Both the position numbers and the translations under genes were made by a program. From positions 29,450,001 to 29,514,000 of the forward strand of contig NC_087255.1 of NCBI RefSeq assembly GCF_037042905.1: a stretch of 64,000 nt of DNA, read 5' to 3'. A model generated the notes under the pieces. That model saw nothing but the letters and a program-made list of their open reading frames with translations. It ran no database searches and was not told where the DNA came from. Positions 28,313 through 63,335 of this stretch are shown here, in pieces (the first letter of the stretch is position 1; every line of letters starts with the position of its first letter). Source of the stretch: Lytechinus pictus. Lineage: Eukaryota.

Positions 28313-31300
28313 TCAACGACGAATTTGCCCAGGTACCCAAACACTTCCGTTTAAATATGTTGGAGGGGGCTCCGTTTGTTGTAATCCCGGTCGATCCAAG
28401 TACGGATATGCATAAGGGTACGGCTCTGTATATCCCGAGGAATCTCCTATCACAGGTGTTTCACTGAAGGCGCCATCAACATCAGTGGTGTTTTCGTATA
28501 GTCCAAAGCCATCTGTTGTTTCATATACATGTGATGGAGGCATTTCAGGGTTTGACTGGACACGATTTAGCTCAAGGGAGGATGGCAGACGCCCTGGAAG
28601 AACAGTAGACCTCTCGGTAGATGGAGTTTGATTGATGTTCGTTCTTATTGGATCTGGCTCGAGGTAGGATGGTAGACGACCAGGAAGGGCGACATTAGAA
28701 GACTTTGTTGACTCAACCGATGGAGATCTATCTCGACTGGCAATAGAATGATACAATATACCGTAATGATTTGAACTCTGTTGTTTAGTATTTTTCTTTT
28801 ATTTAGAATCCGCGATTCTTTTTTACTGTTCATCCCCCCTATAAACCTTAAAACTTGTCTTCCTCTTTGCCAATTTCTCCCAATAAATACTTTTTAATAA
28901 CCCTTTCTCTGTCCCTCTTTTTTTTTGTCTTCATCTTGTTCTTCTACCCATCCTTTTCCTTCTTCCTTTCCGACTATACTTCTTCTTTTTCTTCTTCCCC
29001 TCCTCATTCCTCTTCTTCTACTACTTCTACTACTCCTACTAATACTACTACTACTATATACATTTCCCCTTTTCTTATTTTTTTTCTTCATCTTCTCCTA
29101 CTACTGCTGCTGCTGCTACACTTCTACTACTACTCCTGCTACTACTACTACTATATACATTTCCCCTTTTCTTATTTTTTTTCTTCATCTTCTCCTACTA
29201 CTGCTGCTGCTGCTACACTTCTACTACTACTACTGCTGCTGCTGCTGCTACACTACTACTACTACTTCTATTACTCCTACTGCTGCTGCTACACTACTAT
29301 TACTTCTACTACTACTAATACTACTCCTGCTACTACTACTATTTCTACTACTACTTCTACTACTACTATACACACTTTTCCCTTAATTTTCTTCTTATTT
29401 TTTTTCTTCATCTTTTCCTTCTTCTTTTCCTTCTTCAGCGTATAGGCATGTACCAATAAGTCATCTTACCTTATTTTAATTCCAATAGTTATTATCAAGA
29501 TGATGATTAGAACTCCAATTATTGAACCTCCTGAGATAACGATGATAAACATCGATTGTGGTAGATTCTGGTTGCCATCTATGTAATATAAAATAATTAT
29601 ATTTTGGTTTGGGCAAAAATCGATCGTGAACATCCGAAAGGATCACTAGCGGTACTTTAATCTTTCCAAATCAAACTAAGAAAGTTGTAATCAAAAGAAA
29701 TGAACCAATATAGGGAATAAAATAGTTATAACAATTAGAAGATTAAGCATGGAACGGACTCCTGTCCAAATAATTTAATCAACATTTGAGAAGCACGTTT
29801 GGATTAATTTTCGACTGGGTCTTAATAGCATTTAAGTTTCATTTATAATCGTATGTGGCGGATACCGGCGGTAGGGGCATATCCGGCCTGTGAATACCCC
29901 CCCCCCCCCCCCCGCGCATTTGAGAGCCATTATAAATCGAGTGGAAAATGTCTTGCAATTTTTGCTTGTCAAATTTTTCTTGAAAGAAATATCCATCTTT
30001 CTTTCTTTTAAACAGTACTGCAACCTCCTTGGTAAATCCTGGATCCGCCCCTGATAATCGTTCGAAATGCTAGTCTATAGTCTAGTCAGACGGACCCTGC
30101 AGCTTCTGTCTTTGCCTTTACGAGTCTGATGTGCCGTTATTATATACGCAAAGAATCAGCAATACGTCTGATGCGGAGGAGCCGTGGTGTAGTGGTTCTG
30201 ATTCTCGCCTTGTAAACAGAGGGTCGTGTGTTCGAATTCCACCTCGGTCTGGTGTCCTTTGGCAAGGCGTTAATCCACAGTTTGCCACTCTCGACCCAGG
30301 GGCTAAATGGGTACCCGATAGGATGTGAAAGTCATTGTAGCTTGTCCAGTACTGTGTGCGCCTCACCGGCGACTGACTGGAATACTCCACAGGGAGTGGA
30401 GGATGTGCACACATTGTGTGCGGGAATGACTGATTGAATCCGATGACCGGGGTAATATATGTAAAGCGCTTAGACACGTCGTGATGTATTAAGCGCTATA
30501 TAAAAGCGGATTATTATTAATATTATGCGAAAGACTGCGTACATGTACAGTGGCTGCGTTCTCGAAAGGCTTGCAATTGAAGAAATTCATTTTAAACCAT
30601 AACACCCTTTCTAATTGTATATTTGAATAATTCCAAAACACTGTTTCTTCCCCCAAAACGCATCAATGCACGGCAGTACGCAAATTTTTTTTTCTTTGGA
30701 TCAGGCGGGTTATGAGCAAGAATCATTCAAATAATCGAAGAAACTCGAAAGCGAGGGAGCAAGGACGCCGAGCTTGTCTAAGGGCGCAATTTCTAAAGCG
30801 AAATTTCTAGCACCCTTTTAGCTGTTTAGTGAATTTTCCTAAGTACATTTTTTTCAATGCAAGTTTTCAAAATTTCGGAGGGGGGGGGGGGGTAGGAAAC
30901 GCCTACCCTTTATAATTATCTCCAGGCTCCGCGGGGAGTACCTCCATGATCCAGTCCATGACCGTACGCAGCAGAGGGGGGGGGGTCACACTAACATTCT
31001 AATGACAATTTTTACAAAAAGTATGCACGAAAATGTTCAATTCCACTGTGGAAAATGCAAAAGCTCCCCCATGACAAGCTCGGTTGCTTCACTCTCGCTT
31101 TTTTAGTTTCTAAGAAAATGTTTACGTGTATTGCCCCCCCCCCCCCCGGCCCGGTAAATATTTCTTTGAACAGCCAGCATGATCCAGTCATAAAGACCTA
31201 CCTGCTGTCGTAGAGTTAATCGTTGTAGACATCGAAGAGGACCCGGCTATTGTCGTGTGATTGGTGGAATCTTGAACGACGGTCGTGGTAGTTGTCATCG

Positions 31301-34300
31301 AATCTGCGGTTGATGGACACGGCGCTTGCTGGGGTGCAGACTTGGAATCTGGATCACAGATGACTATCGTGGATGAGGGATTAAAACAAACTACATAATT
31401 AAAATTTGAAATGAAATCTGAAATCAAGAAACGTGTCTTAGAGAAAATAGCCATCAAACGGTACTGCATATCAGTAATCAAGATTGCTAAGAAACCCAAT
31501 GTTCGCTTATTATGATTATTGTCAACACTCGAGATCTTTCTCCAATCCAGACATCCTTTTTATCAGATTGGACCTTAATATACGGAAGCCACCTTATTCC
31601 CAAGGATAACGTAAAGGATTGGCACTGGGTTGGGCAATTTAAGAGTCACATTATTTAGGAAGATATCTTCCATATATCGACGTCCAACCTGGACTAATCT
31701 TCTTTGTGCTGCGGATAAGTGACGATGAAGTATTGCTGGAAATTACAAAGTGGCACAATAGACGACGCGACTAGAAGATTAAGACACAACGTAGATTGCA
31801 TTACCATGGTTACAATGCTATCGAAGAGGAGCATTCTAGTAGCCAATGGAGATACTTCTGAATGACATGTTACTGATCGTCACCGGCTCCTGTACTGGGT
31901 TTCATGAAGGGACTTTATCCGACAAGTTCTGGTTTATCCGACAATTACCATAGTAACAGTACCTCTCAGCCAATCAGAATCAAGGAAAGATGTCAGATCT
32001 GACAACTTGTCGGACAAAAATGTTGATGAAACGCTCCCCTGATATCACTATTCATCCTGATTGGCGATAATATATACTTGTATTATAGTAAGATTATAAC
32101 ATGTGCGTGCTTTTAATACATCACTGGATATCTCGACTCTAATGGGCTATCTTGTCAGAGTACGCCTGGCAGATAAAATGATATAAAAATAAGCAAAATA
32201 TATGATCGACAGCCATTATAGATACCTTCCGAAAATTCGCTAATAAAGATATGCCTCAGATCCCGAAATTGAACTTCGTTGCCTTGGATCGTTATTTCTG
32301 TTTGTTCACTTCTTCGCGACTTGTCGATTTCTAAGATGACCGACTGAGTATTATCAGAGTAGAATATCTTATCTTCCCTTCCAAGGAGCGCGAGGCCGTA
32401 AGGTTTGATGAAGGAGAAGCCTTGCACCTTGGTAACGTGTTCCCTACGGTCTTTACCATTAATAGTTACAGACTCCACACGCCCTCGCCCAAAGTCTGCC
32501 CAGTACAAACGATCCTCTAAAAAGAAGAAAACATATAACATGTCTTAAAATCGTCAAGGTAGAATTGACAAAAATGGAATGTTACATTAAATTTGAATTT
32601 GACATTAAAAGTTGTCTGAGCAGAATACAGTTCTATCCACACTACACCTCTTCTGTGTGTACATTATTGGCATTCAAAACTTTGCATGTGTATTAATAAT
32701 AGTTGGATGTTATAACTTCTCTTATCTTTTTATATTAGTGCGAGTTTTCTTCTTGGTATAAGTAAGATGACAATATAGGATAAATTATTGCTGCAATAAC
32801 CGTGTAACATAGAACAAATTCATGAATGTACACTGTACTATTGAAATTACATGAACAAAAAATATATAGTTACAGCATTATTGTGATAATCTGTTCTGTC
32901 GTCGCGTTGTTGTATTTTTTTAAAATCCACATTAAGTTTAATTAACAACATAAAAATGCCTTATTACCATCGTGGTTGAGGGAAACTGCAGTCGGATAAT
33001 TCAGCTCATTTGAAACGATCGTCATGCGTTGGCTGCCTGTGGTATTGACACGCTCAATTTTCCTAGGATTGTTATTGTCACCCCGATCAGCCCAAAATAG
33101 AAGGCTGTATAAAACAAATAAATATATGAATGAATGGATGAATGACTGAATGATTGAATAGATGGATGGATGGACGAATTAAGGAATGATTGAATAAACA
33201 AACGAATGATTGAATGAATGAATCAATCAATCAATCAATAAATAAATAAATGAAAATAATATATGAAACTGCCGAATGTTGGCGGAAAAAAAACAACGGA
33301 ATGAGTAAGAGGCCACAAGGGAAAGGTTGGAGCATGAATCGCGAATTGGAAAAAAGGAAGGGCGGATATTTGTCATATCGTGAAAAGAGGCAACAATAAC
33401 ATAATTTCTTGCCAAAAGCCTCCCCCATGTGATATATTTGTATTAAAAATAATATTCGAACCATACATTTCATAGCCTAATGGCATAATTATGAAACAAT
33501 ATTCTGATCCAGCTTACAATAATTAAAGGCCCCATTTGATTTAGGAAAGAAAAAAGGAAATCATTAAATTAGATACCAATCGAAAGCGTGTTAACTACAA
33601 AGCATATGCAGATTCACTTTTACCGGTTTCTATGGTAACAACATACATGGTGATAAAACGGAAAACTTTTTTTTTCATTAACATAATGTTCCCCAGCGAA
33701 GACAGCTCAAACGAGGCAGGATGATATTGCTTGATTTAGTTGAAAGTGAATAAACATCCGACATGTCCGAGGCAATGAAAGTTCAGACAAGGATTGTGTA
33801 TAAGAGGCTGTTCTCACTACGTTCCTAAAACTAGTTTACTGGGAACCGGTTCAGAAAGCCAGTTTGGAAGATCGCTTTGCTAGCGTTCTCACTTGATCAC
33901 ACGAAAGTGGTTTTCAAAATCACTTCACGTATAGCGCTCTTGTTGCTATGGAAACGCTCTCAGTGGGGAGACACGTTTCGCGCGAAATTCGAAACCGCAG
34001 CATAGGCATTCTACACCTGTCGTGTGGAGTAGCGCGCTCAAAATGTGCGAAGATCGCTTCCCGAAGAACGGTTGTGTCCTCACTTACGCTAAAACCACTT
34101 TTCCGATGCGAAGCGATCTTGAAAACTACATCGCGAGGTGGTCTTCCAAACTGGTTTGGAAGAGCGCTTCCAAGAGCGCTTCGACCGTTCTCACTTAGCG
34201 TTAAACTAGTTTCCACTAAACTAGTTTCCACTAAACTAGTTTAAGGAACTGAGTGAGAACAGCCTCTAATTCCCTCACTTGTTTCTCGTGGACACTGTGA

Positions 34301-35825
34301 TACCTTCCGGCCTCGTTAATCCACTATTGACCAATACAGTTCTGTCAGTGCCGTTAAGGGTTGAAGATCCTACCACATCAAGTTCATAGTCTGTCCAGTA
34401 AATTCTGTCGTTCATCGTGTCAATGGCCAGACCAGCAGGATCTGCGACAAAAATATGGAAATGCATTTTCCAACTGTCATATATTAGCAGGGTAGAATTT
34501 ATCATTAAAAAACATTGACGTTGGAAAATTATTATTTAAAAGAAAATGACATAATACTTCTTACTACATGAAGTATGAATTCAGAACACGATAGTTGATT
34601 AGAGCACGACGTCTTATATCCTATCACCATAATCTATAGGCCTAGATAGATAGTTGTGTTTAAATATCGCGTATTTTATAAGTTGCACAAATTTGCCTGT
34701 ATAGTATCTGCAAATATCGTACGCCGAAATTTGACGGATTCCTCATTATAATTTTATGCAAAACTTGGGAAATATCTTGTCTTGATATCAAATACAATCA
34801 AATTTGTAAAATTAGGACAAAATGTCCTGGTCACGATTTGAGGCAATTATGTTTCTCCATCAGGCAAATTCACTTACATCCTAATTCTTCCACTATGATT
34901 CTCTGATCAGTACCATCAATATTCGCTCTTAGGATGGCGTCAAGAACACCATCTGACCAGAAGACAGTCCTTGATCTATTGTCAAAGGCGACTGCCCATG
35001 GCAACATCAGGTTGTCCAAAGGCAGAGCTTTAAAGTCTGTTTCAGCAAAAGACCCGTTTTCATCGGAAACACCCACGTATATCGCCTGACTCCCCATCCC
35101 TGGATCAGCGACGAACATTTCAGCTGGAAATAAGGTAAAAACATAAATTTGAAATCAACCGGTTACGGTATATCATTTCGACAAGAAATCATCGAAGATA
35201 CTTTATTAACTTCGCCGAGGACATTTGATCTAAAAAGGGCAACTGAACCCACATGAGCTCCTGCACATGAGAAAATTCAAGTAAGCATAAATATGCATAG
35301 GTACTTTAATGTTTAGTTTTATTTTCACATAGCATTAAATTTACATGAAATTTACAGAAACACTGGCTTTTTTAAATTTACCCAAATACCTAATACACTG
35401 TAAAAAAAAATATATTGGGTAAAATGTATACCACCACGAGGGTAATGATGTGTCCAACCAATTTGGGGCAGTATTTTACCCAATGCGGAAAGTATATTGT
35501 CCAGTAAGGTTAAAAAATAAGCAGCAATTACTTTAGAATGGGCAACATTTTCATCACACTGGATAAATAAAAATGCCCAAAAGAAATGCCCAATGTTGGT
35601 TGGACACATACATAATTACCCTCATGGAGCACTTTTACCCAATATTTTTTAGAGTGTATGTGAGCTTGCTTCCTTTAACACAATATTGGATAATCCTTTG
35701 TATTTTTTTTAAATACAGATTGAACTTATAAACAATGTTAAATGAAACTTATATATACCTCCATAAGTGCAGATTTTGAAAAATCCTGGAACTGCGAAGA
35801 CTAGAGCAGTGGTTATGAACCTCAT
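28313..35825 (-). CDS. LRP-like single-pass membrane protein: signal peptide, one six-bladed YWTD (LDLR class B) beta-propeller, S/T-rich stalk, TM helix, Tyr-rich tail; 541 aa
   Basis: Exons 35759-35825, 34878-35123, 34279-34441, 32968-33104, 32226-32516, 31202-31390, 29470-29578, 28313-28736, all GT-AG and phase-consistent (1626 nt). Blade motifs FVAD, FWSD, YWTD, FWAD, YWAD, FYSD. TM MFIIVISGGSIIGVLIIILIITIGI. Confidence 0.85.
28970..29370. repeat. (CTA/CTG/CTT)n low-complexity microsatellite
   Basis: Trinucleotide runs that generate spurious poly-L/T/Y ORFs. Confidence 0.9.
30175..30520 (+). mobile_element. Full-length tRNA-derived SINE (CORE/Meta-like centre, L2-like tail)
   Basis: A box GTGGTGTAGTGG, B box GTTCGAATTCC, centre CCTTTGGCAAGGC...GACCCAGG...AAATGGGTACC, tail TAAGCGCTATATAAAAGCGGA(TTA)n. 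Confidence 0.85.
33804..34266. mobile_element. PIF/Harbinger-type MITE (TAA TSD)
   Basis: TAA|GAGGCTGTTCTCACT ... AGTGAGAACAGCCTC|TAA, long imperfect inverted arms. Confidence 0.85.
35396..35656. mobile_element. CACT-ended MITE; second copy at ~39109-39362
   Basis: CACTGTAAAAAA..TATTGGGTAAA ... TTTACCCAATATTTTT(T)AGAGTG. The two copies are highly similar. Confidence 0.8.
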
Positions 35826-36241
35826 CTTTGAGATGAAATTAAATACCTGTGAATCAAATTATGGAAATTAAAATTATCATCGCAAACCCATGACAAGTCA
35901 ATGGAAGTAATTTTCCATTATTATTATTTTTTTTTAAAGAATGAATATCAGACGATTATTGAAATCGCATCATTTACTCACACAACAACATGGTTTTATA
36001 TTCACTTGGTGTCACTACCATTACGTTGATTACGTTGTAATACCATAATGATTATTAATCCACAATTTGGTATAATATTACTTTGCCCAACTATCGCTTC
36101 CGTCTAAATCTGGGAGGGGAAAGGGTTGGGGATATTCCCTACTTTTCGGAGAAGAGGTGTAGCATGTACAATCACCCCACACTTTTCAAGACAGAAACGT
36201 TATTTTTTTAATCACCGAATGATGCGTGGATTTATCTTTAA

Positions 36242-36838
36242 AGGACAAGTCCACCCCAACGAAAGGTTGATTTGAATAAAAAGAGAAAAATCCAACGAGC
36301 ATAACACTGAAAATTTCATCAAAATCGGGTGTAAAATAAGAAAGTTATGACATTTTAAAGTTTCGCTTAATTTCACAAAACAGTTCTATGTACATTCTGG
36401 TCGGTATGCAAATGAGGGGACTGATGACATCACTCACTCACTATTTCTTTTGTATTTCATTATGTGAAATATGATTCATTCCCATTTTCTCCTCATTGTC
36501 CTTAAAACAAAAGTTTCATTCCACCCTGAACAAGTGGAATTCCCATCGCCTTAATATTTTATGGTTCTGTGAAGTTGGTCCTTATTGTTAAATCTGTAAA
36601 AATTGAAATATTCTGTAATTCAAAAATAAAAAACAAAAGAAATAGTGAGTGAGGGACATCGACTCTCATTCGCATGTCATTGAGATGTGCATATAACTGT
36701 TTTGTGAAAAATAAGCGAAACTTTAAAATGTCATAACTTCCTTATTTTACATCCGATTTTGATGAAATTTTCAGCATTATGCTAGTTTGATTTTTTCTAT
36801 CTATTAAAATCAACATTCTTCTGAGGTGGACTTGACCT
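36242..36838. mobile_element. Kolobok-type MITE, same family as 10127-10711, inverted
   Basis: TTAA|AGGACAAGTCCACC ... GGTGGACTTGACCT|TTAA. Confidence 0.85.
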
Positions 36839-39512
36839 TTAAATGCGGTTAAAGTGCTTAAACTTGCCAAATACCGCGTTCAAAGAATTCAAAATTTCTC
36901 TCGCTGTCGCCCCGCTCCGGTGCTCAATCTAATCTTACAAAATTTAAGCCATGGCATAGTCCTACGTTTAGCTTATTGCAAAATCCCTCTATCATGAGAG
37001 TATGGTTATAATACGTCCATTTATGAATCATATGATACCAAATACCTTTAAATATAGTTATAACTTATATTACTTCAAATGATCATAAGCCAATCAAATC
37101 TTCCGTTGAGTTAATACACTGGCGTGAATGTGGGGGGGGGGGGGGGGGGAGGCAAGGGTCATATTATCCTAGCATCTTTGTGGAAGGGGAAGATATTTGA
37201 TACAAAAAATATACAAAAACCATATAGTTTAAGTTAAGTGTATATACCATGAGTTACTAATGACATTGACCAACATTCCGTTAATGAAACACAGAAGCAA
37301 GTTAATTAATACAGCAATATTTCCCACACACTTTCATCCGTTTATAGGAGAATTTAATTCACAACAATGTAATAAATATTTCAAATATGAAATCTGTTCA
37401 AAATAATGAATGTTGCATCATCACCCAATAATCTTAAAGATTATTCAAAATCTTTCCTTTCTGCAATATTTTACTTTTAATTTGCTTCCTTTGCCATTTT
37501 CACATTTTTAGAAGTTTACAGTTTGGCCTGTGATGGCACCCTATGCATGCCATAGGTGGTGGCCTATAATCAGTTTAATAAAGCACCCTTAATCCCGATA
37601 ATCAGATCCCCATTTTCATTCTTATCTCACCTTTAACCAGTGAGCAAATGAGTTTCATTGGACAAAATATGGACTGTTTAATAATTTTTTGCTCATTATA
37701 TTTCCTTTTCTTCTAGAGTTTAATTTATTGATTAATTACCTTTATAATCCTCTGTAATGTATTCACATCTTTTTTAACGACTGAAGCAACCTTTTCAAGA
37801 CTCGCTCATTACGTTCCCTCGCTGCATTTCTCCAATGATTGCACACACTTGAAATACGATTTTGGCACCAATTCTGTTTCTAACTATTGAAAATTTGCTC
37901 GCTCGCATCACTCACTCGCATATTGATATTAACTGCAATTCTTTACTTAAATCTCTACAAATCCATTACAATATAGCCATCGGAAAAAAAATCGTGATAG
38001 ACCTTTGACTGAAAGATGGTAGTACAGTGAACACTTTTACAGTATATACACATCCGACATTGCCAAATATGTGATAATTACACACCACCGAAAGAGGGCT
38101 TTGGACATCATTTTGTCTTCCAACTACTGAAAATTTACTTGATGGTTTCGTTTGCTCGCATATATTGATATCTACTGTAAAAAATCATGATAGGCCTCTA
38201 ACTGAAAGATGGTAGTACAATATACACATTAACAATATAGCCATCGAAAAAATCGTGATAGGCCTTGAACTGAAAGATGGTAGTATAATGTACACATTTA
38301 CAGTATATACCTACGTATACATTGCCCGTGAAGTGATAATATTACATACCACTTGAAAGAGGTTTTTGGACACCATCTCGTCTTCCAACTACTGAAAATT
38401 TGCTCGTTCGCTTCGCTCGCTCGCATATTGTTATTAACTGTAATTCCTTACTTTATATCACAAAAAACCTATTCCAATATAGCCATCGAAAAAAAAAATC
38501 GTATAGGCCTTTATGAGAAAGATAACAGTATTATGTACACGGTTATGTACCCACGTATACATAGCTCTTGGTGTGGGGGTGTACCCAAAATTTTGATTAT
38601 TCAGGTGAATATATTGCTATCACCCCCACCCCCCTTGCTCTGAATGGATTTACACCATTGTCACGTTCGGTCACACTGAATGCAAATATTGTCCAAGGTT
38701 GAATAATTTGGATTTCCTCGTTTGTTGAAACTTTCTTTTTAAAAAATAATTAAAAAAACATTATTTGCGAAACTATTGGACCATGAATCCACAGATACAA
38801 TTTCACCCAACCACACACACACACACAAAAAAAACACAATAAATCGTGTTGATAAGTTATCCGTAATAGAGATCATGCGATATTTTGCATTATAATTTTG
38901 ACTAAAGAGAGAGAAGGTCACATACCTTACATTCTTAAATTCTGAAATATAAAATAACAAAGTTCAGTGGGCCATTTTTTTTTTAGTTATATCAATCGGA
39001 GTTCAATTCAAATAATATAATGTTGTCATTATATCATGGGTCTCATATAGGTCCAAGGGTATCAATAATACAATTTCTTAAAAAAACTAACAATATGTAT
39101 ACAGTATACACTGTAAAAAATATTGGGTAAAATTTTAATCAGCACGAGGGTAATTATGTGTCCAACCAATTTGGGGCAGTATTTTACCCAATGCGGGAAG
39201 CATATTGTCCAGTAAGGTTGAAAAATAAGCAGCATTTACTTTAGAATGGACAAAATTGTCATCACACTGGATAAATAAAAAAATGCCCCAAAGAAATGCC
39301 CAAAGTTGGTTGAACACATAATTACCCTCATGGAGCATTTTTACCCAATATTTTAAAGAGTGCATATATAATACATTTCGTTGATAAAACAATTTACAAA
39401 AAGCGGATTCAGCATAAAGTTATATCATCAATGCGGCAGTCACACAGATGATACTGATTTTAGAACAATGCACTATTCATGGAGTCATACTATCGGTCGG
39501 TTTGGAGTCGAC

Positions 39513-41003
39513 TTAGATTTAGATTTTATTTCCGTTCAACAATTTTTTCAAAATATAATCAAAGAAACAATACATATTCAATATAATCGATAATACAGAC
39601 AAATCAATGAAATTTCGTAACAAATGTTGAATATAAATTAAACAAAACTACAACTTGTTGCAGTAATTTTATCAATGAAAAGAAACAAGAAATGAACGGA
39701 GGGACTTGCCAAGAAAAGCAAAAGCTTGTAGAGAAGGCAAGCCCCTAAACTTAGTTTCAATACTAAATTATAAACAAACTATATATACAACTCTATACAA
39801 AAATCGAGACGGACACAGAAGACAAACTTAAAACAAGTAATCCACAAATATCAAAATAAAACGAATAAGCGACAACAAAAATAAGAGAAAGTAATTCAAA
39901 TAATAATAATTACAGTGGTAACACACAAAAAAAAGTACTTACAAAATCATAATCGGGAGGGAAAAGTGGCAAAGGAAAGAAAGAGGGAGATAAGGGCGGT
40001 GCAAATAAAAAGTGCAAATGAAAAGAGGAACATGGCAGGTGCACAGGTCGTAATGTATTGTATCATGTTGTAGTGTTGTTGTTTTTTTTATAAGTAAAGT
40101 TTGACAAATTTATTGGTAGTTAAAGGTTAAGTTATTATTAGTTTTAGTTTAGATTATGTGTTAGCTTGACTTGTAAGTGTGGAGTATTGACAAATGAGCA
40201 TCTTTTTAAGTTTCCGTTTAAAAATATTAAGGTTTGTAGATTCTTTAAAGTCGTTGGGCAGGGAATTCCAATACACAGGTCCAAAAAAGATAAAAGAGTT
40301 TTTCGCTAATATAGTACGGGTAGGGGGTAGGTGATAACAATTACGTTGTCTCGTTGGGTAATCGTGTATAGAGGAGTTTTTACAGAACATATTTGAAAAA
40401 ATTGTTAGGAGATCATCTTTGTTTAGTTTATACATAAATTGGGCGAGTTGGAAAAGATATAAATCACTCACTTTAAGAATATTATTTTGGAAGAATAGTA
40501 TATCTGTGTGTGATCTGAATTGGGTTTGAAAAATTATTCTAAGATCCTTCTTCTGCAGCAACAGTATTCTTTGTAATTGTGTTTGGATCGCACAACCCCA
40601 TGCCAAAATGCCATAATTAATGTATGGTAATATTAATGTATGATACAGTGTAAGTAAAGTGTGAGATGGGAGAGAATATTTGAGTTTGTTGATAATTCCG
40701 ATGTTTCTTGAAATTGTTTTGCATATATTATTGATGTGTGGTTTCCATGATAGCTTATTATCAATAGTAACCCCCAAAAATCTGGTCTCTGAAACATTTT
40801 CAAGAACAGTATTATCAAAAATTATGTTATCAGGTATTTTATTTATTCTGTTACTAAAAAGCATAAGATTCGTCTTTTGTAAGTTAAGTGATAGTTTATT
40901 CGCCTTAATCCAGTCAGTGACATGTATAAGTTCTGAGTTTACAATTCTTACAAGTTGGTTTACGTTATCATGAGAAAAGAAAATGTTCGAATCGTCAGCA
41001 AAC
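39513..41003 (-). mobile_element. 5'-truncated CR1/L2-type LINE (reverse transcriptase C-terminus and 3'UTR)
   Basis: ORF 40154-41005 contains FADDS, WIKANKLSLNLQKT, FLGVTIDNKLSWKPHI, LYHTLILPYINYG. AATAAA plus (TCTAAA)n-like tail near 39513-39530. Confidence 0.9.
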
Positions 41004-41021
41004 AATGTTCATGTTGTGACT

Positions 41022-50802: not shown

Positions 50803-50967
50803 TACCTCGGTCACATTTGCTCTTCGGTGGCCGTACGGTGAGTCGAAAACAGCACTTTTATTGATTTTTATTCAAACCATGTATATGTAGCTATTACAAA
50901 AAAAATGTCAAAACGGCTGTTTTCGACTCGCCGTACGGCCGCCGTAGAGCAAATGTGACCGAGGTAT
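50803..50967. mobile_element. Small Harbinger-type MITE (~50-bp TIR, TAA flanks); duplicated at ~55585-55747
   Basis: TACCTCGGTCACATTTGCTCT...GAGTCGAAAACAGC and its reverse complement. Confidence 0.85.
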
Positions 50968-52686
50968 AAGTCTTCTGATCAATTACCAAAATTCTACCCG
51001 TATGTTTGGTGGGTACATACTCAATTGTTAAATCAAATAGACGCAGATATCAATCATAGTAATAATAAACAGTTCTTGTATAGCGATTATAACATTATTA
51101 TGATTATAACGTCTCTGAGCGGTTCAAAAGGACTTATTACAATGGATTTAGTTTGGTGGTCGTAATATATATTTACAGCGTACTCGCATAATTAATTCCT
51201 GTAAGGTACACATTTACCCGCGTTGAGTGCAGCACAATGTGGATCAATTTCATGATTTTGACATGCTATTCAGAAAATGATATAACAAATTAACCATTTT
51301 GTCTTTTACCTCTCTCTTTTGTCCCCTCACTCATATTTGACACTTTTAATAAATTTTACTATGTCTATAATAAAAACTAGACTGCAAATTGCAAAACTCT
51401 GTGTCAAATAAAATGCGGCAATGGTAAATAATGAATCTAGTCTCACTACTTCAGACTCTACACTATGCGAATTGCAACAAAAAAATGTCTGTGCATGCAT
51501 ACTATAGGCATAGCAGCCAAGCAGCCCCCTTCCACATCTGTACGCCAGTGACTGCAACGAATATACTATCGAAGGCTTTTGATGTTTGGCGTTTACCTAC
51601 ATTGGATCTAATACGTGAAAATCTACGATATATGAAACACGATATATTATGTAACAATGATTCTAAATGATTTTAAATGGTAAATCATGAAGAAAACAGA
51701 AGGGGAAACCAGCAAGATGCAGCTTGTGCTGGGAATACCCGTGATGATTCAAACTTAATTCAAATTAAATATGACGAGCATTATGAAAAAATGTTATATG
51801 ACATGCAATAGAATATGAATTTAGAGCGAATCTAATTCATGAAAAGGGGATAATGGAATTATCAGTGGTCTGTTTTATAAATCTATAAAAAAAAAATGAC
51901 AAGCCAATCAAAATCACTGTTTGGCAGTTCCTAAAAGGTAAAGTTAATGAAACCTTTAATGAAACGGGTCCGTGGTGGCATATTCCTCCTAACTTTTTTT
52001 GGGTAAATGTTGACACCCATACCTACTCAAATCAGTCAAAAAACCACTTCCAATAATTTTATTCCAGATGGTTACTAATTACGGGATACTAGTAGTGGAA
52101 ATAAATAATATCAAGTATCATGCTATGCATAATAGACACATAAACAGGGAGGATTCTGATAATCTTCCCACAACTTAAAGCTATGGTAAGGGTAATGTTT
52201 TTGGAGAGGATTAATCTTACAAAAAGTAAAGAGACCATTGCATCTTAGTTCTGTTGATCGTTTCCAAATGCTGAATTTCGAATATTGAGCTAGTGACCGC
52301 CCTTTCTTAGAAATGTATTATTTTCTTCTTTAATAAAAGTGACCCGTTAGCAATTATCTTTTAAATCTATATAGTGATTAGATATAAGACAGCCTTCAGA
52401 CAATAATGGTATCCTGTAAATGATCATTCTAGGGCATATGGAATTATATTTGAAGGAAATACCGAGAAATCTAAATTTATTGTTCAACCGATCAAACAAA
52501 ATGTCATACCTTATCACAAAATTTATCCAATAAAGCGCATTTTTATTTGTATTCTTCACATTAGACTTGTTTTAAGGCAAACATAAAAAAAATTAAATAA
52601 TCCATCTCAAAAGTGAATGGGATTACCATAATTTTTAACAGACCCTCAGTTCGATAAGGATTTAAAATGTTCTTGAATCTGTTTAG

Positions 52687-53185
52687 CTAATCTTCTTGGA
52701 CGACTAAGTACTCATTAGGCTTATCCTTAGCTTCCGAACGGGGCCGATGTTCATAATAATGATGATTGAGGTTCTTTGGCGCCATCATGGGTGAGGGCGT
52801 CATGTCGATGGGAGCGCGTTGTTAGCCTATCCTTGACTCGTACATGTTACCCACGGCAAGTGTGGCAAGCTCACCACTCGAGGTGGTAGGATCACAAACA
52901 GAATATTCCGGTGGGAGATCATCAACTTTCGGTGTGTCTGGTAATGCTCCTAACCTACTCCCTTCAGAGGTACGGGGAATCTGTGTTGAGTATGTCGATG
53001 TGTAGTCATTAGAAAGTACATCCTTAGGAGCATCATAGATGGGATCATCCAGGCCTAATATCTTGCTTTCGGCGCATGGGTAAGACATACCTCCTACAGC
53101 ACCCATTGGTAGATTGGCAGCAGAGTTGGTATTACCGTGGAGGTCGCTGGCTAATGGCAGATCCCGGTTTCTTTTATTTACAAAT
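52687..53185 (-). pseudogene. Duplicated copy of the EGF-sushi receptor last exon with a premature stop
   Basis: 499-nt near-identical copy of 57526-58024. TAC>TAA at 52822-52824. The acceptor AG is retained. Confidence 0.8.
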
Positions 53186-56100
53186 CTGAGAAAAAAACAA
53201 GAATATTGAGGTTCAGAATTCCTTTTTTTTTAATCATTTTTTCTCAAAAAGTATATATTGTCATCAGGTATTTACTCCTCCAGTAAATCACATGCAAACA
53301 TCATTATATCATCACACAAGGGCCGTACTATACCACTGGCTTTGTGAGGCTTAATTCATGAGGGGCTGATTTCTTGGATAAGGCACATTATTTTTCTTTA
53401 GAAAATGTGAGTGAGCAAAACGAGTGAAAAAATATATCTCATTCTCCACTCTGTCACCTTCATATACATCCATCATTCCTGGCTATGTTATATTTATTTA
53501 TTTGTTTGTTTTCATTAGATTATAATGCAGGGTAGGCCTGTTCAGTTATGCAAAACTGCTTTCCAAAGGCGCCCTACAGTTTAACAAATAACTCAATACC
53601 ATAGCAATTCAATGTATGTAACATAATAAAGTGCAAACAGAATACGTTATTATAGAATGAATCAACAAGTATTATGGAATTATTACATCAAGTTATTCAG
53701 TGTAATTACATGTATTACAGTCAGAATTTTAATGATTTACAGTGATTTTTTAATGCATGGAGGGACGTGCATTTTTGTATATCACGAGGGAGCGAATTGA
53801 ATAAGACGGCAGCAACATATTCAAAATATTTGTTTTCATAAACCGTCCTTGGTCAGGGTATTTGAAGGGGACATTGTTCAGAATATCGTGTTTTATGACT
53901 TAAATTACGTTTGCAGATAATAATAATAATCCGCTTTTATATAGTGCTTAATAAATCGGAACGACGTGTCTAAGCACTTTACATAATTATTACCCCGGTC
54001 ATCGGATTCAATCAGTCATCCCTGCACACAATGTGTGCACATCCTCCACTCTCTGGGGAGTATTCCAGTTAGTCGCCGGTGAGGCGCACACAGTACTGTA
54101 CAAGCTACAATGACTTTCACATCCTACCGGGTACCAATTTTGCAGTGATGTTAATTTAGATTTGCGCCAAAATATGCAGTGAATGAATTCCAGATGCCAA
54201 TGATGTCATAATCCTACATGAGTTAGTATTCATTTGCAAATCCCTTTTCAATTAAATTAACTTGAGAATTGATACTGATATAATAGCAGGGCCCGCTGGT
54301 AGAACAGTTTTCGAAACTGAAGTGGCTACCCTGGGTAAATATACCTATATTATTATTATTATTAAATGTGTTTATTGAATAATTGAAATGTAAATTACTG
54401 AAAAAGTGTTTTGAAATGGATTTTAATACAACTCTTGTAGGATTATGTTATCATTGGCATCTCAATTCATTCATTAAATACCGCCATGCCATAGTTTGGC
54501 GCAAATCAACAATTACATCCCTGCAAATAATTCCTCCTGATCATCCAAGCGTTAACACCTACCACATAAATATGGTTTCAAAATATTTGGGAGAAGATGC
54601 TCTTTCCATTCATGTATAATAATAATGCATTCATGACATATTTCTTTTATTTTTGAGGTGTCAATTTTTTTTACTCACACCATTGAGGGTCAGCAAAATG
54701 CAGTTGCTGCTTGTCAACCCTTATCTATCTGAGAATTTGGACAAAAATTTGTGGGGAGGGGGGGGGGGGGCAATGAGCGACCTCTTTCGTACAGACCCTT
54801 CCTATTCATTATTGATTCTTTGATATAGATGAAAACGTGAATAAATTGACTCGAAAACGAAAAAAAATAGGTTTGCTAAAATAATTGAGACTAAAATGCC
54901 GTGAAATATTTTGAAACCGTAGGCCTAGAAAGGGCCGAGTAACGATTTCTGGCGACCATAGTAAGATTAACAATAGGCACCCGTTTCACTAGAAAAAAAA
55001 ATCAATCATAATTATAGATTGTTTCTACGTAATACCATTTATTTATATTATTTTGCATATTACTGTAAAGAATTATCACAATTCACTTAAATCATTTAAA
55101 ATCAGTGTCGTGCTGCATCAACTAATAGGCACGATAGGTCACCTATAACAATATTGTACAACCTTGCAGCTTTGCAAGCGAAAGATTATCAAAATAGGTT
55201 TAGATATCACGATCGTGAAAAATTAAAGATTCCTCACGTCACAAGATCACTCACATGAACCCTTTCAGTGATGTTGGAACTTACAACATTCACATATGGG
55301 ATATCATCGAGAAGGGCAATATTTATAAAGGTTGCTTGTCTAATTCTCTAACTAATTTGTATTGTTTTTGTATTTGATGGTTAAACCAATATTAATATTA
55401 AACTGTACAATAATGTATTGAATCCCCGGCATGTACTCGCTCTCTGAACTGAAGGTTCTTATTCGTCAACGATGGTTAGGGATGAAGAAATGGAACAGAA
55501 CAGAATCAGATTCACATTTATATGAATTTACAGGCAAATTTTCAAGCCGTAACTCTGTCCATTCTTTCATTTCAGGAATACTAATACCTCGGTCACATTT
55601 GCTCTTCGGTGGCCGTACGGTGAGTCGAAAACAGCACTTTTATTGATTTTTATTCAAACCATGTATATGTAGCTATTACAAAAAAATGTCAAAACGGCTG
55701 TTTTCGACTCGCCGTACGGCCGCCGTAGAGCAAATGTGACCGAGGTATAAGTCTTCTGATCAATTACCAAAATTCTACCCGTATGTTTGGTGGGTACATA
55801 CTCAATTGTTAAATCAAATAGACGCATATATCAATCATTATAATAAACAGTTCTTGTATAGCGATTATAACATTATTATGATTATAACGTCTCTGAGCGG
55901 TTCAAAAGGACTTATTACAATGGATTTAGTTTGGTGGTCGTAATATATATTTACAGCGTACTCGCATAATTAATTCCTGTAAGGTACACATTTACCCGCG
56001 TTGAGTGCAGCACAATGTGGATCAATTTCATGATTTTGACATGCTATTCATAAAATGATATAACAAATTAACCCATTTGTCTTTTACCTCTCTCTTTTGT

Positions 56101-57525
56101 CCCCTATTTTTTTCCTTCTTGATCTTGAAACGGGGGGGGGGGGTGCATGGCCTAGTATGCAAGCAAATACTCATATTTGACACTTTTGATAAATTTTACT
56201 ATGTCTATAATAAAAACTAGACTGCAAATTGCAAAACTCTGTGTCAAATAAAATGCGGCAATGGTAAATAATGAATCTAGTCTCACTACTTCAGACTCTA
56301 CACTATGCGAATTGCACCAAAAAAATGTCTGTGCATGCATACTAGGCATAGCACCCAAGCAGTCCCCTTCAACATATGTACGCCAGTGACTGCAACGAAT
56401 ATACTATCGAAGGCTTTTGATGTTTGGCGTTTACCTACATTGGATCTAATACGTGAAAATCTACGATATATGAAACACAATATATTATGTAACAATGATT
56501 CTAAATGATTTTAAATGGTAAATCATGAAGAAAACAGAAGGGGAAACCAGCAAAATGCAGCTTGTGCTGGGAATACCCGTGATGATTCAAACTTAATTCA
56601 AATTAAATATGACGAGCATTATGAAAAAATGTTATATTACATGCAGTAGAATATGAATTTAGAGCGAATCTAATTCATGAAAAGGGGATAATGGAATTAT
56701 CAGTGGTCTGTTTTATAAATCTATAACAAAAAAAAAAGGACAAGCCAATCAAAATCACTGTTTGGCAGTTCCTAAAAGGTAAAGTTAATGAAACCTTTAA
56801 TGAAACGGGTCCGTGGTGGCATATTCCTCCTAACTTTTTTGGGGTAAATGTTGACACCCATACCTACTCAAATCAGTCAAAAAACCACTTCCAATAATTT
56901 TATTCCAGATGGTTACTAATTACGGGATACTAGTAGTGGAAATAAATAATATCAAGTATCATGCTATGCATAATAGACACATAAACAGGGAGGATTCTGA
57001 TAATCTTCCCACAGCTTAAAGCTATGGTAAGGGTAATGTTTTTGGAGAGGATTAATCTTACAAAAAGTAAAGAGACCATTGCATCTTAGTTCTGTTGATC
57101 GTTTCCAAATGCTGAATTTCGAATATTGAGCTAGTGACCGCCCTTTCTTAGAAATGTATTATTTTCTTCTTTAATAAAAGTGACCCGTTAGCAATTATCT
57201 TTTAAATCTATATAGTGATTAGATATAAGACAGCCTTCAGACAATAATGGTATCCTGTAAATGATCATTCTAGGGCATATGGATTTATATTTGAAGGAAA
57301 TACCGAGAAATCTAAATTTATTGTTAAACCGATCAAACAAAATGTCATACCTTATCACAAAATTTCTCCAATAAAGCGCATTTTTATTTGTATCCTTCAC
57401 ATTAGACTTGTTTCAAGGCAAACATTAAAAAAAAAAAAAATCAATCTCAAAAGTGAATGGGATTACCATAATTTTTAACAGACCCTCAGTTCGATAAGGA
57501 TTAAAATGTTCTTGAATCTGTTTAG

Positions 57526-60500
57526 CTAATCTTCTTGGACGACTAAGTACTCATTAGGCTTATCCTTAGCTTCCGAACGGGGCCGATGTTCATAATAATG
57601 ATGATTGAGGTTCTTTGGCGCCATCATGGGTGAGGGCGTCATGTCGATGGGAGCGCGTTGGTAGCCTATCCTTGACTCGTACATGCTACCCACGGCAAGT
57701 GTGGCAAGCTCACCACCCGAGGTGGTAGGATCACAAACAGAATATTCCGGTGGGAGATCATCAACTTTCGGTGTGTCTGGTAATGCTCCTAACCTACTCC
57801 CTTCAGAGGTACGGGGAATTTGTGTTGAGTATGTCGATGTGTAGTCATTAGAAAGTACATCCTTAGGAGCAGCATAGATGGGATCATCCAGGCCTAATAT
57901 CTTGCTTTCGGCGCATGGGTAGGACATACCTCCTACAGCACCCATTGGTAGATTGGCAGCAGGGTTGGTATTACCGTGGAGGTCGCTGGCTAATGGAAGA
58001 TCCCGGTTTCTTTTATTTACAAATCTGAAAAAATAAGAATATTGAGGTTCAGAATTCATTTTTTTAATCATTTTTTCTCAAAAAGTATATATTGTCATCA
58101 GGTATTTACTCCTCCAGTAAATTACATGCAAACACCATTATATCAACACACAAGGTCCGTACTATACCACTGGCTTTGTGAGGCTTAATTCATGAGGGGC
58201 TGATTTCTTGGATAAGGCACATTATTTTTCTTTAGATAATGTGAGTGAGCAAAGCGAGTGAAAAAATATATCTCATTCTCCACTCTGTCACCTTCATTTA
58301 CATCCATCATTCCTGGCTATGTTATATTTATTTATTTGTTTGTTTTCATTATATCATAATGCAAGGTAGGCCTGTTAAGTTATGCAAAACTGCTTTCCAA
58401 AGGCGCCCTGCAGTTTAACAAATAACTCAATATCATAGCAATTCAATGTATGTAACATAATAAAGTAAAAACAGAATACGTTATTATAGAATGAATCAAC
58501 AAGTATTATGGAATCATTACATCAAGTTATTCAGTGTAATTACATGTATTACAGTCAGAATTTTAATGATTTACAGTGATTTTTTAATGCATGGAGGGAC
58601 GTACATTTTTGTATATCACAAGGGAGCGAATTAAATAAGACGGCAGCAACATATTCAAAATATTTGTTTTCATAAACCATCCTTGGTCAGGGTATTTGAA
58701 GGGGACATTGTTCAGAATATCGTGTTTTATGACTTAAATTACGTTTGCAGATAATAATAATAATCCGCTTTTATATAGTGCTTAATAAATCGGAACGACG
58801 TGTCTAAGCACTTTACATAATTATTACCCCGGTCATCGGATTCAATCAGTCATCCCGCACACAATGTGTGCACATCCTCCACTCTCTGGGGAGTATTCCA
58901 GTTAGTCGCCGGTGAGGCGCACACAGTACTGTACAAGCTATACAATGACTTTCACATCCTACCGGGTACCAATTTTGCACCTGGGTCGAGAGTGGCAAAG
59001 TGTGGACTAACGCCTTGCCAAAGGACGCCAGACCGAGGTGGGATTCGAACACACAACCCTCTTTTTACAAGGCGAGAGTCAGAATCACTGCACCACGGTT
59101 CCTCCACCGTGATCCAAAAGTGGTCCCAAATAGGATGGGGCTAAATCGTTTTGTATTTTGAAAGCAAGAACACAATATTGATATTTGATACGTTCCTCCA
59201 CTGTTTGCCATTTGAGTGTAGACAACAATCATGTTGGGGAGTAAGATAGTCGTTAATTATTCAAAATTATTCGGGCATACTTATTCTGCAATTTTTATAT
59301 CTTATTTTTGTTATTTTCGTTGGTTTTTGCACAGCTTCCTTAAGATGTACAACAATAATCAATGTAAGGTAAAATCATGGCAAAATATAAATTCTTAAGA
59401 ATTCTAGGCGGAAGAAATTGTTTAATTACCTAATTTATACACCCGGCTATCGTACGAGATATTTTTTCATACTCAGAATCATTTCTCACTTCCCATCCCC
59501 CCTCCCCTCTCTCTCTCTTATCACCTCTTCATTTATGAAAACCTGGAAATATACTCACTTGTATAGGAAACATAGGCAGATTCCAATTAATAGAACGAAC
59601 AATGCCCCAGCCACAATGCCTATTAGAGCTGATATTGGCAACCCTTGCTCATCTGTACACAAAGAAAAGAGAGATAAATATATTACTAATCATTTGATAA
59701 ATCTTGTATTTCATCTCTTTGCTGAGCATAATTCAAGAGAAAGAACTAATACTTGACCGTCAAAATAACGTCAGATATGCTTTAATACCAATACCAAGAT
59801 TATTTGTATTGATTTCAGGGCGATTCTAGAAGTAATATACAATTAAGAATAATTTATTATATTTATAGTATAGACCTTTCCCGCGCGACACTAATTTGTA
59901 ATGCATCACAAACACTACAAGTTGAAAATGATTAAAAAATATAACCATTTACATTGCATAGAAAAGGTCTCTGTATTAGAGCATTAACGCAAACTAAAAT
60001 TTCAAAACTACATAATATTTATAATGAGGCTAACATCTTTAAGGCTTTCATCAATTGAGAAATGTAATTGCCTGAATAGTTCCAAGCTAGCAGTGGCCAA
60101 ATATTTCACATTTTCAAACATTCCATTGACATAGATAGGGAACACAAATAATTCTGATTTAACATATTACAACAATTTCGAATCAAGCGTGTTAACAGAG
60201 TATTAGACACGGCAAGAGGATTGTGAAAATACGTTTATGTTAGGTGTAGTTTTGTTCAGTACCTGATTGACAATCTAGATCGGCCAGCTGAATCCATTCT
60301 CCGGTGGCGCCATTGCATCTCCAAACGACAGAAGCATCTATCTCATCGCATTCAATCGTGATCAGAGCTCCTGCCATGTACGTACTCTGGGGTTGCGAAA
60401 CATGGCTAAGAGGATGGTTCGGCAACGGACACGTGATCTCTAAAAATCGATTAAAAGAAATATCGTTTTTAACCAAATTTTCCGCAAAAAGTGGCAGAGG

Positions 60501-63098
60501 CTTTAGCTATGTCATGTGAGTAGTAGAAAAGCATAACGGTAGCTAATGATTTACGACCGTAGTTTGCAGTAGGTGACGAACTACCTAGGATCCACTTAAA
60601 AAATCTTTGCACATATTAGAAAGGCATTGGTCCCAAACACAATGTCCCTCAGAAAGGACTTAAGTAATGGTTAAGTCATCTTACTTACTTAGATTTTGTT
60701 TTAGATAAAAGGGTGGTAAATGAATACCACTAACTAATCCAACAAACCTTCACTGCATGTGTCTCCAGTAAAACCCTCAGCACACTCGCATGTATATCCT
60801 AGTGATTCTTCCGTGCAGGTGGCTCCATTCGTACAGGGTGACGGGTCGCAATAAGTAATGTCTGTAAACATGGCAAGACAAACGATAAATATAAACTTCG
60901 GATATTAGTGCTACATCATAAGAGTGTTACTCTTTCAATGTGGGTAATATCATAGTCAAGAACCTTATCATTAAACAATTTACTCCAGCATTTTTTTTGC
61001 ATTTCCATCATAAATGTTAAGAAAAAGAACCAAAACCGTTACGTCACACCCCCATAAAGGTGTTGGTACTGATTTTGGCGTGATTTCATTATGGTGGGGA
61101 TAGTACACGCTTTCCCTCTTTTCTTTTTTTTCTTTTCTATTCTCGAATTCATTTTAGTTATTTCTTTTCATCGTCTTTTTGCTTCTATTCTTGTTCTTGT
61201 CTTATTCCTCTCCGTATAATTCTTGTTCACCCCTTATCTTCTTTCTTCCTTCATGTGCTCATGGAAACATTAACTTTCAATCCTTTTCTCTCAGGCCAGT
61301 CTCTGAAAATGAAGTTCTTAAAGTGTTATGTGGTATGAAAAATATGAAATTAATCGGCACTGATGGAATTCCTATGTATATTTTGAAATTGTCTGTTCAT
61401 GTAATAATATCGTCTCTGACTCATATTATAAATACTTCATTATCAAGTGGGATAATGCCCTCACGTTGGAAACAGGCCAAAGTTGTGCCGATTTATAAAT
61501 CTGGTGAAAAAAACAAATCCCTCTAATTATCGGCCAATTGCGATTCTTTCATCGGCTTTTAAAACTTGTTCAAATTCAACTTGCTAACCACTTGAAAGTG
61601 AACAATTTACTTTCTTCACATCAGTCTGGCTTTAGAGAAAAGCACTCAACCATCACTTCTCTTATAAGAGTCACTGATGAATGGCTTCACGCTCTTGACA
61701 ATGGTTAATACCCTGGAGTGGTTTTCATAGACATGCGTAAGGCATTTGATACCGTTAACCATTATATTCTTTTTGAAAAACTCAATTCTCTTGGAGTTTC
61801 AGATTCTAGTCTTATATGGTTTAAAAGTTATATGAACCGTAAAATATGTACTTGTATAAATTCTACTATCTCTGACAGAGCCATTGCTCTTTACTATATA
61901 TGTAAATGACATCACAAAGAATGTCGATCAATATACTATCCATTTTTACGCAGATAATACTGTCCTTTATTTTCCCTTAAAAATGTAAGAAATATAGAAA
62001 GTATACTGAACACACAGTTAAACCATATTTACAAATGGACATGATGGATGTGTTCTAATAAGTTGAGTTTAAACTTTGATAAAAAAGAATGTTTGATGAT
62101 TGGGTCCCGCACTATGTTAAATAAGTAATCCCCACGTCAAATATGTGTATAGGGAAAGTGGATCCAACCTAAAGAAAGTGCTAAATATCTTGGAGTGGTT
62201 ATTGATCATCAGTTAAAATGGGACAAACATATTGAATACTTTACTGAAAAAGTGAGCAAGCTGTTAAGTTTTTGGGGGGCTGTCTTCGACACAGTTTTAA
62301 TGAGGCTAGCTTAAAATTTATCTACCAATTAGTTATTCTTCCTAGTTTTACTAAGCTGATATAGTGTACGATTATAACAAAGGATGTGTTACCCAATTGC
62401 AAAAGTTGCAAAACAGAGCTGAAAGAATAATACTTGGGATAAGTCCATTCAAACATATATCGAACTGTAATATTTACCAAATATTAAACTGGGAATAAGT
62501 TTAATATTTTTGGGTGGGTGGTGGGTAGGGTTCGATACTCGGTTTCTACTGAAGGATGGGGTGGGATTGCTGTTCTTTCTCCCTTTAGCTGTTGTTGCTT
62601 TTATGTTATACAAATTTGTTAAATTCATTTGTTAATGAATTTATTTTTGTAATATGAATTTCATGTTGTTTATTTAACATAGCTGGACCCCTCGGCAAAA
62701 CAGTTGTGCTGTAATGGCTCAGCTGAATAGGGCGATCCATCCAATGTTATTTTATCATGTATTACATTATGTTGTAATTTTATATTGTTTTTATATTGGT
62801 AAATAAAATGAAATCAAATCAAAAAAAAAAATGTATAGTTTGTTAATTTCCTCCAATCCTTCAATTATTCTTACTATATTGTTTTTTTTACGATAACTTT
62901 TTCGTGATTTTTCATCCCTAGCTCTATGTCAAAAATAAATTCAATCTGAATGGCCGAGTATTCTCTGGTTTGAATAATACGTACTTGTTTCGCAATTGAG
63001 GCCTGTGAATCCAGGTTGACAGGTACAATCGTAAGAATCCACTTCAGGTTCACTGCAACTCCCATGAACGCAGGGTGCTGAATCGCATTCATTGATAT
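57526..63098 (-). CDS. 3' part of an EGF-EGF-sushi(CCP)-TM receptor with a Tyr-rich cytoplasmic tail; the 5' end lies beyond the gap or window edge
   Basis: Exons 62985-63098 ([14 protein letters not shown]...[13 protein letters not shown], Ca-binding EGF type), 60748-60861 ([12 protein letters not shown]...[12 protein letters not shown]), 60263-60439 (CPLP...IEC...WRC...GEW...DC, sushi), 59559-59652 ([24 protein letters not shown]), 57526-58024 (tail). Phases are consistent. Confidence 0.87.
58751..59105 (-). mobile_element. Same SINE family, reverse orientation; a truncated duplicate lies at ~53918-54144
   Basis: Reverse-complement match to 30175-30520. Confidence 0.85.
61270..62830 (+). 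mobile_element. Decayed CR1/L2-type LINE in an intron of the EGF-sushi gene
   Basis: Frameshifted RT remnants [57 protein letters not shown] plus (AAATC)n tail. Confidence 0.88.
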
Positions 63099-63335
63099 CT
63101 GTAGTCATCATAGTGTTATAAAATTCACAATTTTCACAAATATTTTTAGTATTATAATACCAACTGTCCAGAAGCTATCATAGGGATGAATAGGCGTCGG
63201 GGAAAACATAGGGTTTATTCCATAAAAGCAGTAGAACGACGATTTTATTGGGGGAATTGAATTTATGTCAAAAGTAATTTTGAATAATTGAAGAGGACGA
63301 AAGGTCTCCCTAACGTCGGATTTAAGGTAATTTGT

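Follow-up and report, generated by a model that had tools for sequence, protein, structure and literature searches.

Three co-oriented Lytechinus pictus genes with a shared membrane-end design: two single-propeller receptors and a probable ectodomain-less relative

A stretch of 64,000 nucleotides of Lytechinus pictus DNA (C11:29450001-29514000, contig NC_087255.1; referred to below as the window, in whose coordinates positions are given unless a contig is named) is eukaryotic in character, AT-rich and carries interspersed repeats. It contains three genes on the minus strand, genes 1, 2 and 3, whose 3' ends are built alike. A first-pass annotation had described in each of them a phase-1 intron, a transmembrane (TM) exon with LP just before the helix, a phase-2 intron and a single tail exon. 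The coordinates, AG/GT borders and quoted peptides of these exons were confirmed, and the exon sets correspond exactly to RefSeq proteins. Two bases of a split codon stand at either end of each TM exon, and the tail exons of the three genes open with a single base and continue to a stop codon. The annotation further proposed that the ectodomains might be coupled to different tails. The region is better read, with a probability of about 0.8, as three independent co-oriented genes, each with its TM exon spliced to its own tail exon, in which the shared end design was inherited and gene 2 is a derivative of the receptor family to which genes 1 and 3 belong.

Gene 1 (28313-35825, minus strand) encodes the 532-aa protein XP_063963155.1 (P0058), named 'LRP4-like' in RefSeq. 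The exon model built from the DNA translates to this protein and has AG/GT at every border. Coding exon 35825-35759 specifies the signal peptide, exons 35123-34878, 34441-34279, 33104-32968 and 32516-32226 a YWTD propeller, and exon 31363-31202 a Ser/Thr-rich (mucin-like) stalk. The propeller was recognised by Pfam (Ldl_recept_b, E = 6.8e-27) and includes five YWTD-type motifs and an N-terminal closing strand; EGF and CCP modules are lacking. The TM exon (29578-29470, 109 nt, phase 1 in and phase 2 out) encodes ..GNQNLPQS-MFIIVISGGSIIGVLIIILIITIGI-KI, and the tail exon (28736-28313) encodes 141 aa with PPTY, YEN and YLN motifs. In an older RefSeq annotation, gene 1 was represented by XP_054764925.1 (168 aa), which begins with a Met encoded within the TM exon and includes the TM segment and tail only. 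This model is probably an artefact of an earlier assembly, and could mark an internal start. In the family alignment based on the gene 3 protein, to which the gene 1 exon peptides were added, the gene 1 protein was not retrieved, its 90% cluster representative being the 168-aa model, which falls outside the length range of the search. Trinucleotide arrays of the (CTA/CTG)n type and repeats of 97 nt fill the last intron of gene 1 (29018-29437) and account for its strong GC/AT skew.

Gene 2 (45111-47413, minus strand) corresponds to 'uncharacterized LOC135156024' (XP_063962981.1, 156 aa; P0001), to which the three-exon model is identical. Exon 1 (47413-47347) starts with ATG and encodes 22 aa that are acidic and Ser/Thr-rich, with no signal peptide. 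It is followed by the TM exon (46638-46524, phase 1 in, phase 2 out) and a tail exon (45399-45111) with three YxN motifs and one ITIM-like VMYENI sequence. No Pfam family was assigned to the protein, the only database match of its tail was its own RefSeq protein, and a search for contigs encoding it returned no record.

Gene 3 lies with its 3' part in the window (57526-64000, minus strand) and continues beyond the window end. Its product, XP_054765305.2 (670 aa; P0005), is named 'prolow-density lipoprotein receptor-related protein 1-like'. The exon for EGF1 (64101-63976) crosses the window end at 64000 and is followed by exons for EGF2 (63098-62985), EGF3 (60861-60748), a CCP/Sushi-like module (60439-60263), the TM segment (59652-59559, phase 1 in, phase 2 out) and a 166-aa tail with PPEY and DDPIYAAP (58024-57526). 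By tblastn mapping of the protein, the signal-peptide and propeller exons are located past the window at approximately 64001-70308 (locus L005). The EGF1 exon ends at a GC donor, GAAG/GCAAGT at 63976-63974 (minus strand), of a non-canonical GC-AG intron. Pfam recognised the EGF modules and the propeller (Ldl_recept_b, E = 1.7e-19), which, as in gene 1, has five YWTD-type motifs and an N-terminal closing strand. Orthologues of gene 3 were found in L. variegatus ('pro-epidermal growth factor-like', 95% identical) and S. purpuratus (LOC757083, P0007). The TM helix is ~87% conserved between gene 3 and the S. purpuratus orthologue, far above the tail, which suggests constraint on the helix sequence itself.

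Pfam gave no match for the CCP exon of gene 3, which encodes a module of 59 aa with four Cys residues. A family profile built from nine copies of the module matched factor XIII B (E = 7e-4) and beta2-GPI (E = 4e-3) in the PDB, and residues C6, C33, C44, W51 and C59 are invariant in the family. The AlphaFold model of the module has a pLDDT of 89.5, and the best 40 of the 50 Foldseek matches listed were CCP-containing proteins with TM-scores (a measure of fold similarity) of 0.53-0.71. By profile and by fold, the four-cysteine module is a divergent CCP/Sushi domain.

Genes 1 and 3 belong to a dispersed, echinoid-expanded family of type I receptors with a single six-bladed YWTD (low-density lipoprotein (LDL) receptor class B) propeller. 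The gene 3 propeller gave 48 exon matches on 8 contigs of the L. pictus genome, and the family occupies at least 15 loci, including tandem clusters at C11:15.75-15.83 Mb, on C8 near 10.0 Mb and on C9 near 21.2 Mb. C8 and C6 carry the nearest paralogs of gene 3 (~60% identity in the matching exon), whereas the lowest of the matches listed is gene 1. In a maximum-likelihood tree, gene 3 fell together with its orthologues and paralogs older than the separation of Lytechinus and Strongylocentrotus, and gene 1 formed a long basal branch (1.54) outside the gene 3 clade. The three tails could not be aligned with one another and had no Pfam match. Searches of the L. pictus genome with each tail and with the TM exons of genes 1 and 2 (TM1 and TM2) found only the query itself and a duplicate of the gene 3 tail (see below), hence no genome-wide exon family was detected. 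The low identity of the propellers (33-42%), the deep branch of gene 1, the location of the closest gene 3 paralogs on other contigs and the unique tails therefore indicate old neighbouring paralogs and not a young array of the diversifying kind that had been proposed. Nor did anything examined point to the immune or sensory role suggested for it. A literature search found no paper on an echinoid single-propeller receptor family.

The same end design was found in family members located far from the window. In the genes for the 'LRP4-like' protein P0016 (C11:15.74 Mb) and the 'notch 1-like' protein P0009 (C11:28.42 Mb), which lie 14 Mb and 1 Mb, respectively, from the genes studied, the TM segment has an exon of its own, which ends in phase 2 and follows a CCP exon ending in phase 1. 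P0016 and the S. purpuratus orthologue of gene 3 likewise have GLP or LP ahead of the helix, and the TM segment of gene 3 (TM3) resembles that of P0016 (score 49). The phase-1/TM/phase-2 arrangement is therefore inherited and does not define a local cassette system, in agreement with the explanation that the first-pass annotation had held in reserve, namely that shared phases reflect common ancestry. The family's common ancestor passed on a TM exon, with LP ahead of the helix, set between introns of phase 1 and phase 2 and followed by the tail, and the phase compatibility is a by-product of descent rather than an exchange device. The outer part consists of a propeller and a mucin-like stalk in gene 1, and of a propeller, three EGF modules and the divergent CCP/Sushi module in gene 3; each protein continues with one TM helix and a proline/tyrosine-rich, probably disordered tail.

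The RefSeq names 'LRP4-like', 'LRP1-like' and 'pro-EGF-like' derive from receptors of the LDL-receptor superfamily/pro-EGF type, which, like gene 3, combine a class B propeller, EGF modules, a single TM helix and a tail with tyrosine motifs, and have module exons bounded by phase-1 introns. Unlike these receptors, genes 1 and 3 have only one propeller, no class A repeat in Pfam scans of the two proteins, and PPxY in place of NPxY; furthermore, a CCP module adjoins the membrane in gene 3, and a mucin-like stalk is present in gene 1, which has no EGF module. Further counterparts are the urchin family members P0016, P0009, P0008 ('nidogen-2-like') and S. purpuratus LOC757083, which have in common the order propeller, EGF, CCP, TM and Pro/Tyr-rich tail, the TM exon phases 1 and 2, LP ahead of the helix and a PPxY motif in that tail. 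As compared with these proteins, gene 1 lacks EGF and CCP modules, gene 2 lacks the whole ectodomain, and the tails are unalignable save for the start of the gene 2 tail with that of P0009.

The relationship of gene 2 to the family was assessed by comparison of TM and tail segments with shuffled sequences; in the TM shuffles, the head, helix and tail segments were kept separate, and natural single-pass helices of the proteins retrieved in the analysis were taken as a comparison set. TM1 and TM2 aligned with a score of 61, as compared with 34.8 +/- 5.9 in the segment-wise shuffles (p = 0.0006) and 24-42 for the natural helices; TM2 reached only 24-40 with every helix other than TM1. They share 12 ungapped identities, whereas 7.5 are expected (p = 0.002), and a tblastn search with gene 1 reached the TM2 exon at E = 0.011. 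TM3 is not significantly similar to TM1 or TM2 (p = 0.13 and 0.25). Thus, the expectation that the TM exons would be more alike than chance was borne out for the TM1-TM2 pair and not for TM3. At its start, the gene 2 tail is similar to what P0009 encodes in its first tail exon (score 52 versus 27.8 +/- 5.0, p = 0.0013), the sole significant pair in 21 tail comparisons, and the gene 1 stalk has a weak likeness to the N-terminus of gene 2 (p = 0.034). A search of 45001-49400 at E values up to 50 gave no relic of propeller or EGF exons ahead of gene 2. Taken with the common intron phases and the LP motif, the likenesses of the TM and juxtamembrane segments indicate that gene 2 is probably derived from the propeller-receptor family, without its ectodomain. 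That it is not a decayed relic is argued by its tail of 95 open codons in AT-rich DNA. In gene 2, a new first exon of 22 aa would precede a TM exon and a juxtamembrane segment retained from the family, and the gene product, with an acidic N-terminus and KTKRK past the helix, is predicted to insert N-out, C-in as a signal-anchor protein.

Splicing of gene 3 was examined over positions 57101-63100 (6000 letters) in four runs, two represented by Logan contigs (X1 and X2; kind of run not recorded, and the contigs join exons only) and two by raw RNA reads (X21 and X22). The only joints of gene 3 RNA were 58024/59559, 59652/60263, 60439/60748 and 60861/62985, all CT..AC on the plus strand, and the orientation of reads over gene 3 fits minus-strand RNA. 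The loose ends listed were all within a SINE-like repeat at 58751-59105, and none was at donor 59559 or 60263. Hence no junction from these two donors to acceptors of the other genes was present among the joints and loose ends listed. Candidate poly(A) signals are present downstream of the stop codon in each of the three genes.

Tyrosine makes up ~6% of the tails. Four paralog tails carry PPxY independently (PPTY in gene 1, PPEY in gene 3, PPGY in P0016 and PPSY in P0009); its chance expectation is 0.02-0.16 per tail, and the joint value is ~4e-5. The PPEY, DDPxYAxP and MYES motifs of gene 3 are kept between Lytechinus and Strongylocentrotus, though the tail exon of S. purpuratus is only ~40% identical. 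The gene 2 tail includes three YxN motifs (YTN, YEN and YHN) versus 0.43 expected (p = 0.005 against shuffles), and its single VMYENI match is at chance level (p = 0.18). No ITAM was found in the tails, and NPxY is absent from genes 1, 2 and 3, the only paralog with such a motif being P0009 (NPSY). PPxY is a ligand of class I WW domains, and YxN is preferred by the Grb2 SH2 domain. The tails would act through short linear motifs, of which PPxY is the only one to recur across paralogs; its presence suggests Nedd4-type ubiquitin ligases and endocytic sorting, or other proteins with WW domains, and not signalling of the immunoreceptor kind. If phosphorylated, the three YxN motifs of gene 2 may bind Grb2-type SH2 domains. 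Receptors with PPxY under the control of Nedd4-family ligases include Drosophila Notch, with PPSY and Su(dx), and LRAD3, with Itch. These are likewise EGF-type single-pass receptors with PPxY in a disordered tail, and there is no homology past the modules.

Pairing of the TM helices, proposed on account of the small-xxx-small motifs GSIIG, GVSIA and GIVAG, is speculation. The motifs are indeed present, but 6 of the 8 other TM helices examined have motifs of this type as well, which is chance level. According to a specific version of this idea, the gene 2 protein would join the receptor encoded by gene 1 (or gene 3) through its TM helix and supply YxN docking sites, as the DAP12, FcR-gamma and LAT-type chains do in vertebrates. 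Genes 1 and 2 are adjacent, TM1 and TM2 are the best-kept part of both proteins while the tails have drifted apart, and the number of YxN motifs exceeds that in shuffled tails. Nevertheless, the TM1-TM2 likeness is what common descent gives, and the helices have no charged residues of the DAP12/FcR-gamma type, which together with the lack of an ITAM makes such an arrangement improbable. Vertebrate lymphocyte transmembrane adaptors LAT, NTAL, PAG and LAX resemble gene 2 in having a single TM helix that joins an outer part of very few residues to a Tyr-rich tail with YxN motifs. However, gene 2 shows no sequence relation to them; its own relatives are propeller receptors, and its protein has no cysteine at all, hence no juxtamembrane CxxC palmitoylation motif as in LAT and NTAL. 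It is doubtful that the TM helix of gene 2 is held under selection for pairing with the gene 1 receptor, to which it would lend Grb2-type YxN sites. If it were, the pair would represent an independently evolved echinoderm receptor and signalling chain, the latter derived from a truncated tandem copy of the receptor itself.

Four tails with different tyrosine motifs had been reported. Three of them are distinct, and the YxN, YxxP, PPxY and VMYENI motifs are present, but the fourth (53185-52687) duplicates the tail of gene 3 and is interrupted by TAA at 52824-52822. It lies in copy A (49360-54144) of a 4.8-kb tandem duplication, copy B of which (54139-58979) includes the tail exon of the current RefSeq model of gene 3. 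The copies are 97.6-98.4% identical by self-BLAST (repeat spacings 4779-4841). The tails at 53185-52687 and 58024-57526 differ at 8 bases, one of which turns Tyr121 into TAA. The X1 and X2 contigs showed copy-A letters at positions 57686, 57717, 57820, 57872 and 57963 and in the 3' untranslated region, and the raw-read runs showed a mosaic of A and B letters; the stop-making letter (57661 G>T) was seen in none of the four runs. The older gene 3 protein XP_054765305.1 carries A-type residues and no stop, and L. variegatus has two residues in common with each copy. In view of these observations, the differences between A and B resemble those of segregating alleles of a single locus. Either a tandem duplication of 4.8 kb took place very recently or the assembler placed two haplotypes one after the other, and in both cases the fourth tail is not a fourth kind of tail. 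That it might serve as a genuine second 3' exon of gene 3, spliced 59559 to 53185 in some animals, would accord with its intact acceptor, the copy-A letters in the X1 and X2 contigs and a duplication joint without an N gap. This is unlikely in view of the TAA letter seen in no run, the allele-like mosaic in the raw reads, the A-type residues without a stop in the older protein and the even split of the L. variegatus residues between the copies.

The duplication boundary at 58979 falls inside the interspersed repeat at 58751-59105, which is located in the gene 3 intron between the TM and tail exons and occurs also at 30175-30523 and 53917-54143 (92% identity by self-BLAST). It is termed only SINE-like (short interspersed nuclear element) because ARAGORN called no tRNA in the window, this repeat included. 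RNA depth on the repeat was 200-600x, as compared with 1-3x on exons, due to its many genomic copies, and nearly all reads were in one orientation. Variants with an internal deletion, in which 58841 is joined to 58949 and ~107 nt are skipped, were frequent.

Tail switching, in which read-through transcripts would join the ectodomain and TM exons of gene 3 to TM or tail exons of gene 2 or 1 to give one head with several tails, would make use of the co-orientation and phase compatibility of all TM and tail exons and of the lack of an ectodomain in gene 2, but is very improbable given that the four runs showed, at low depth, canonical gene 3 joints only and no listed loose end at 59559 or 60263, that three distinct RefSeq models have their own ends and separate poly(A)-signal candidates, and that family genes megabases away have identical phases, so that the compatibility is inherited. 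Clustered protocadherins and UGT1A likewise have a row of co-oriented, phase-compatible exons, whereas each of the L. pictus genes has a complete 3' end of its own and no cross-gene RNA junctions were seen for gene 3 in the four runs.

Several points weigh against the reading of three independent genes, with gene 2 as a family derivative. The depth of the raw runs on gene 3 exons was just 1-3 reads, at which rare cross-gene junctions could escape, and the splicing of genes 1 and 2 is taken solely from RefSeq (Gnomon) models. The link of gene 2 to the family consists of two short likenesses (~28 and ~23 residues) with nominal p values near 0.001 each; its tail is not significantly alignable with that of gene 1, and an orthologue was not found. 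The roles ascribed to PPxY and YxN come only from general knowledge of these motifs.

Other features of the window include reverse-transcriptase fragments of non-LTR (long terminal repeat) elements at 40157-41008 (minus strand), between genes 1 and 2, and at 61179-61526 (plus strand), in a gene 3 intron. A tandem array of ~5 copies of a 163-192-nt unit with 87-96% identity occupies 19698-20784. Dispersed repeat pairs, direct and inverted, at 10120-10717 and 36235-36844 and at 4046-4618 and 9584-9014 (83-85% identity) are probably transposon remnants. An open frame of 100 aa that begins with MGNAV (17537-17839, plus strand) is located in a GC-richer stretch (14000-20000) and possibly represents exon 1 of an unrelated gene on that strand. 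A run of 160 N is present at 63473-63632.

Overall, these data change little. The tail-switching system proposed for the locus is not supported, and RefSeq already lists the three genes, with automatic names. For the reference genome, a 4.8-kb repeat, the copies of which are told apart by sites that also vary among transcripts from other animals, indicates a possible haplotype duplication inside a gene model. For the echinoids, the analysis describes an unstudied family of receptors with one propeller, a CCP module close to the membrane (not in gene 1) and PPxY tails. The one modestly new point is the likely origin of gene 2 by truncation of a family receptor, so that gene 2 probably illustrates how a receptor can give rise to a small 'tail-only' gene with a single TM pass.

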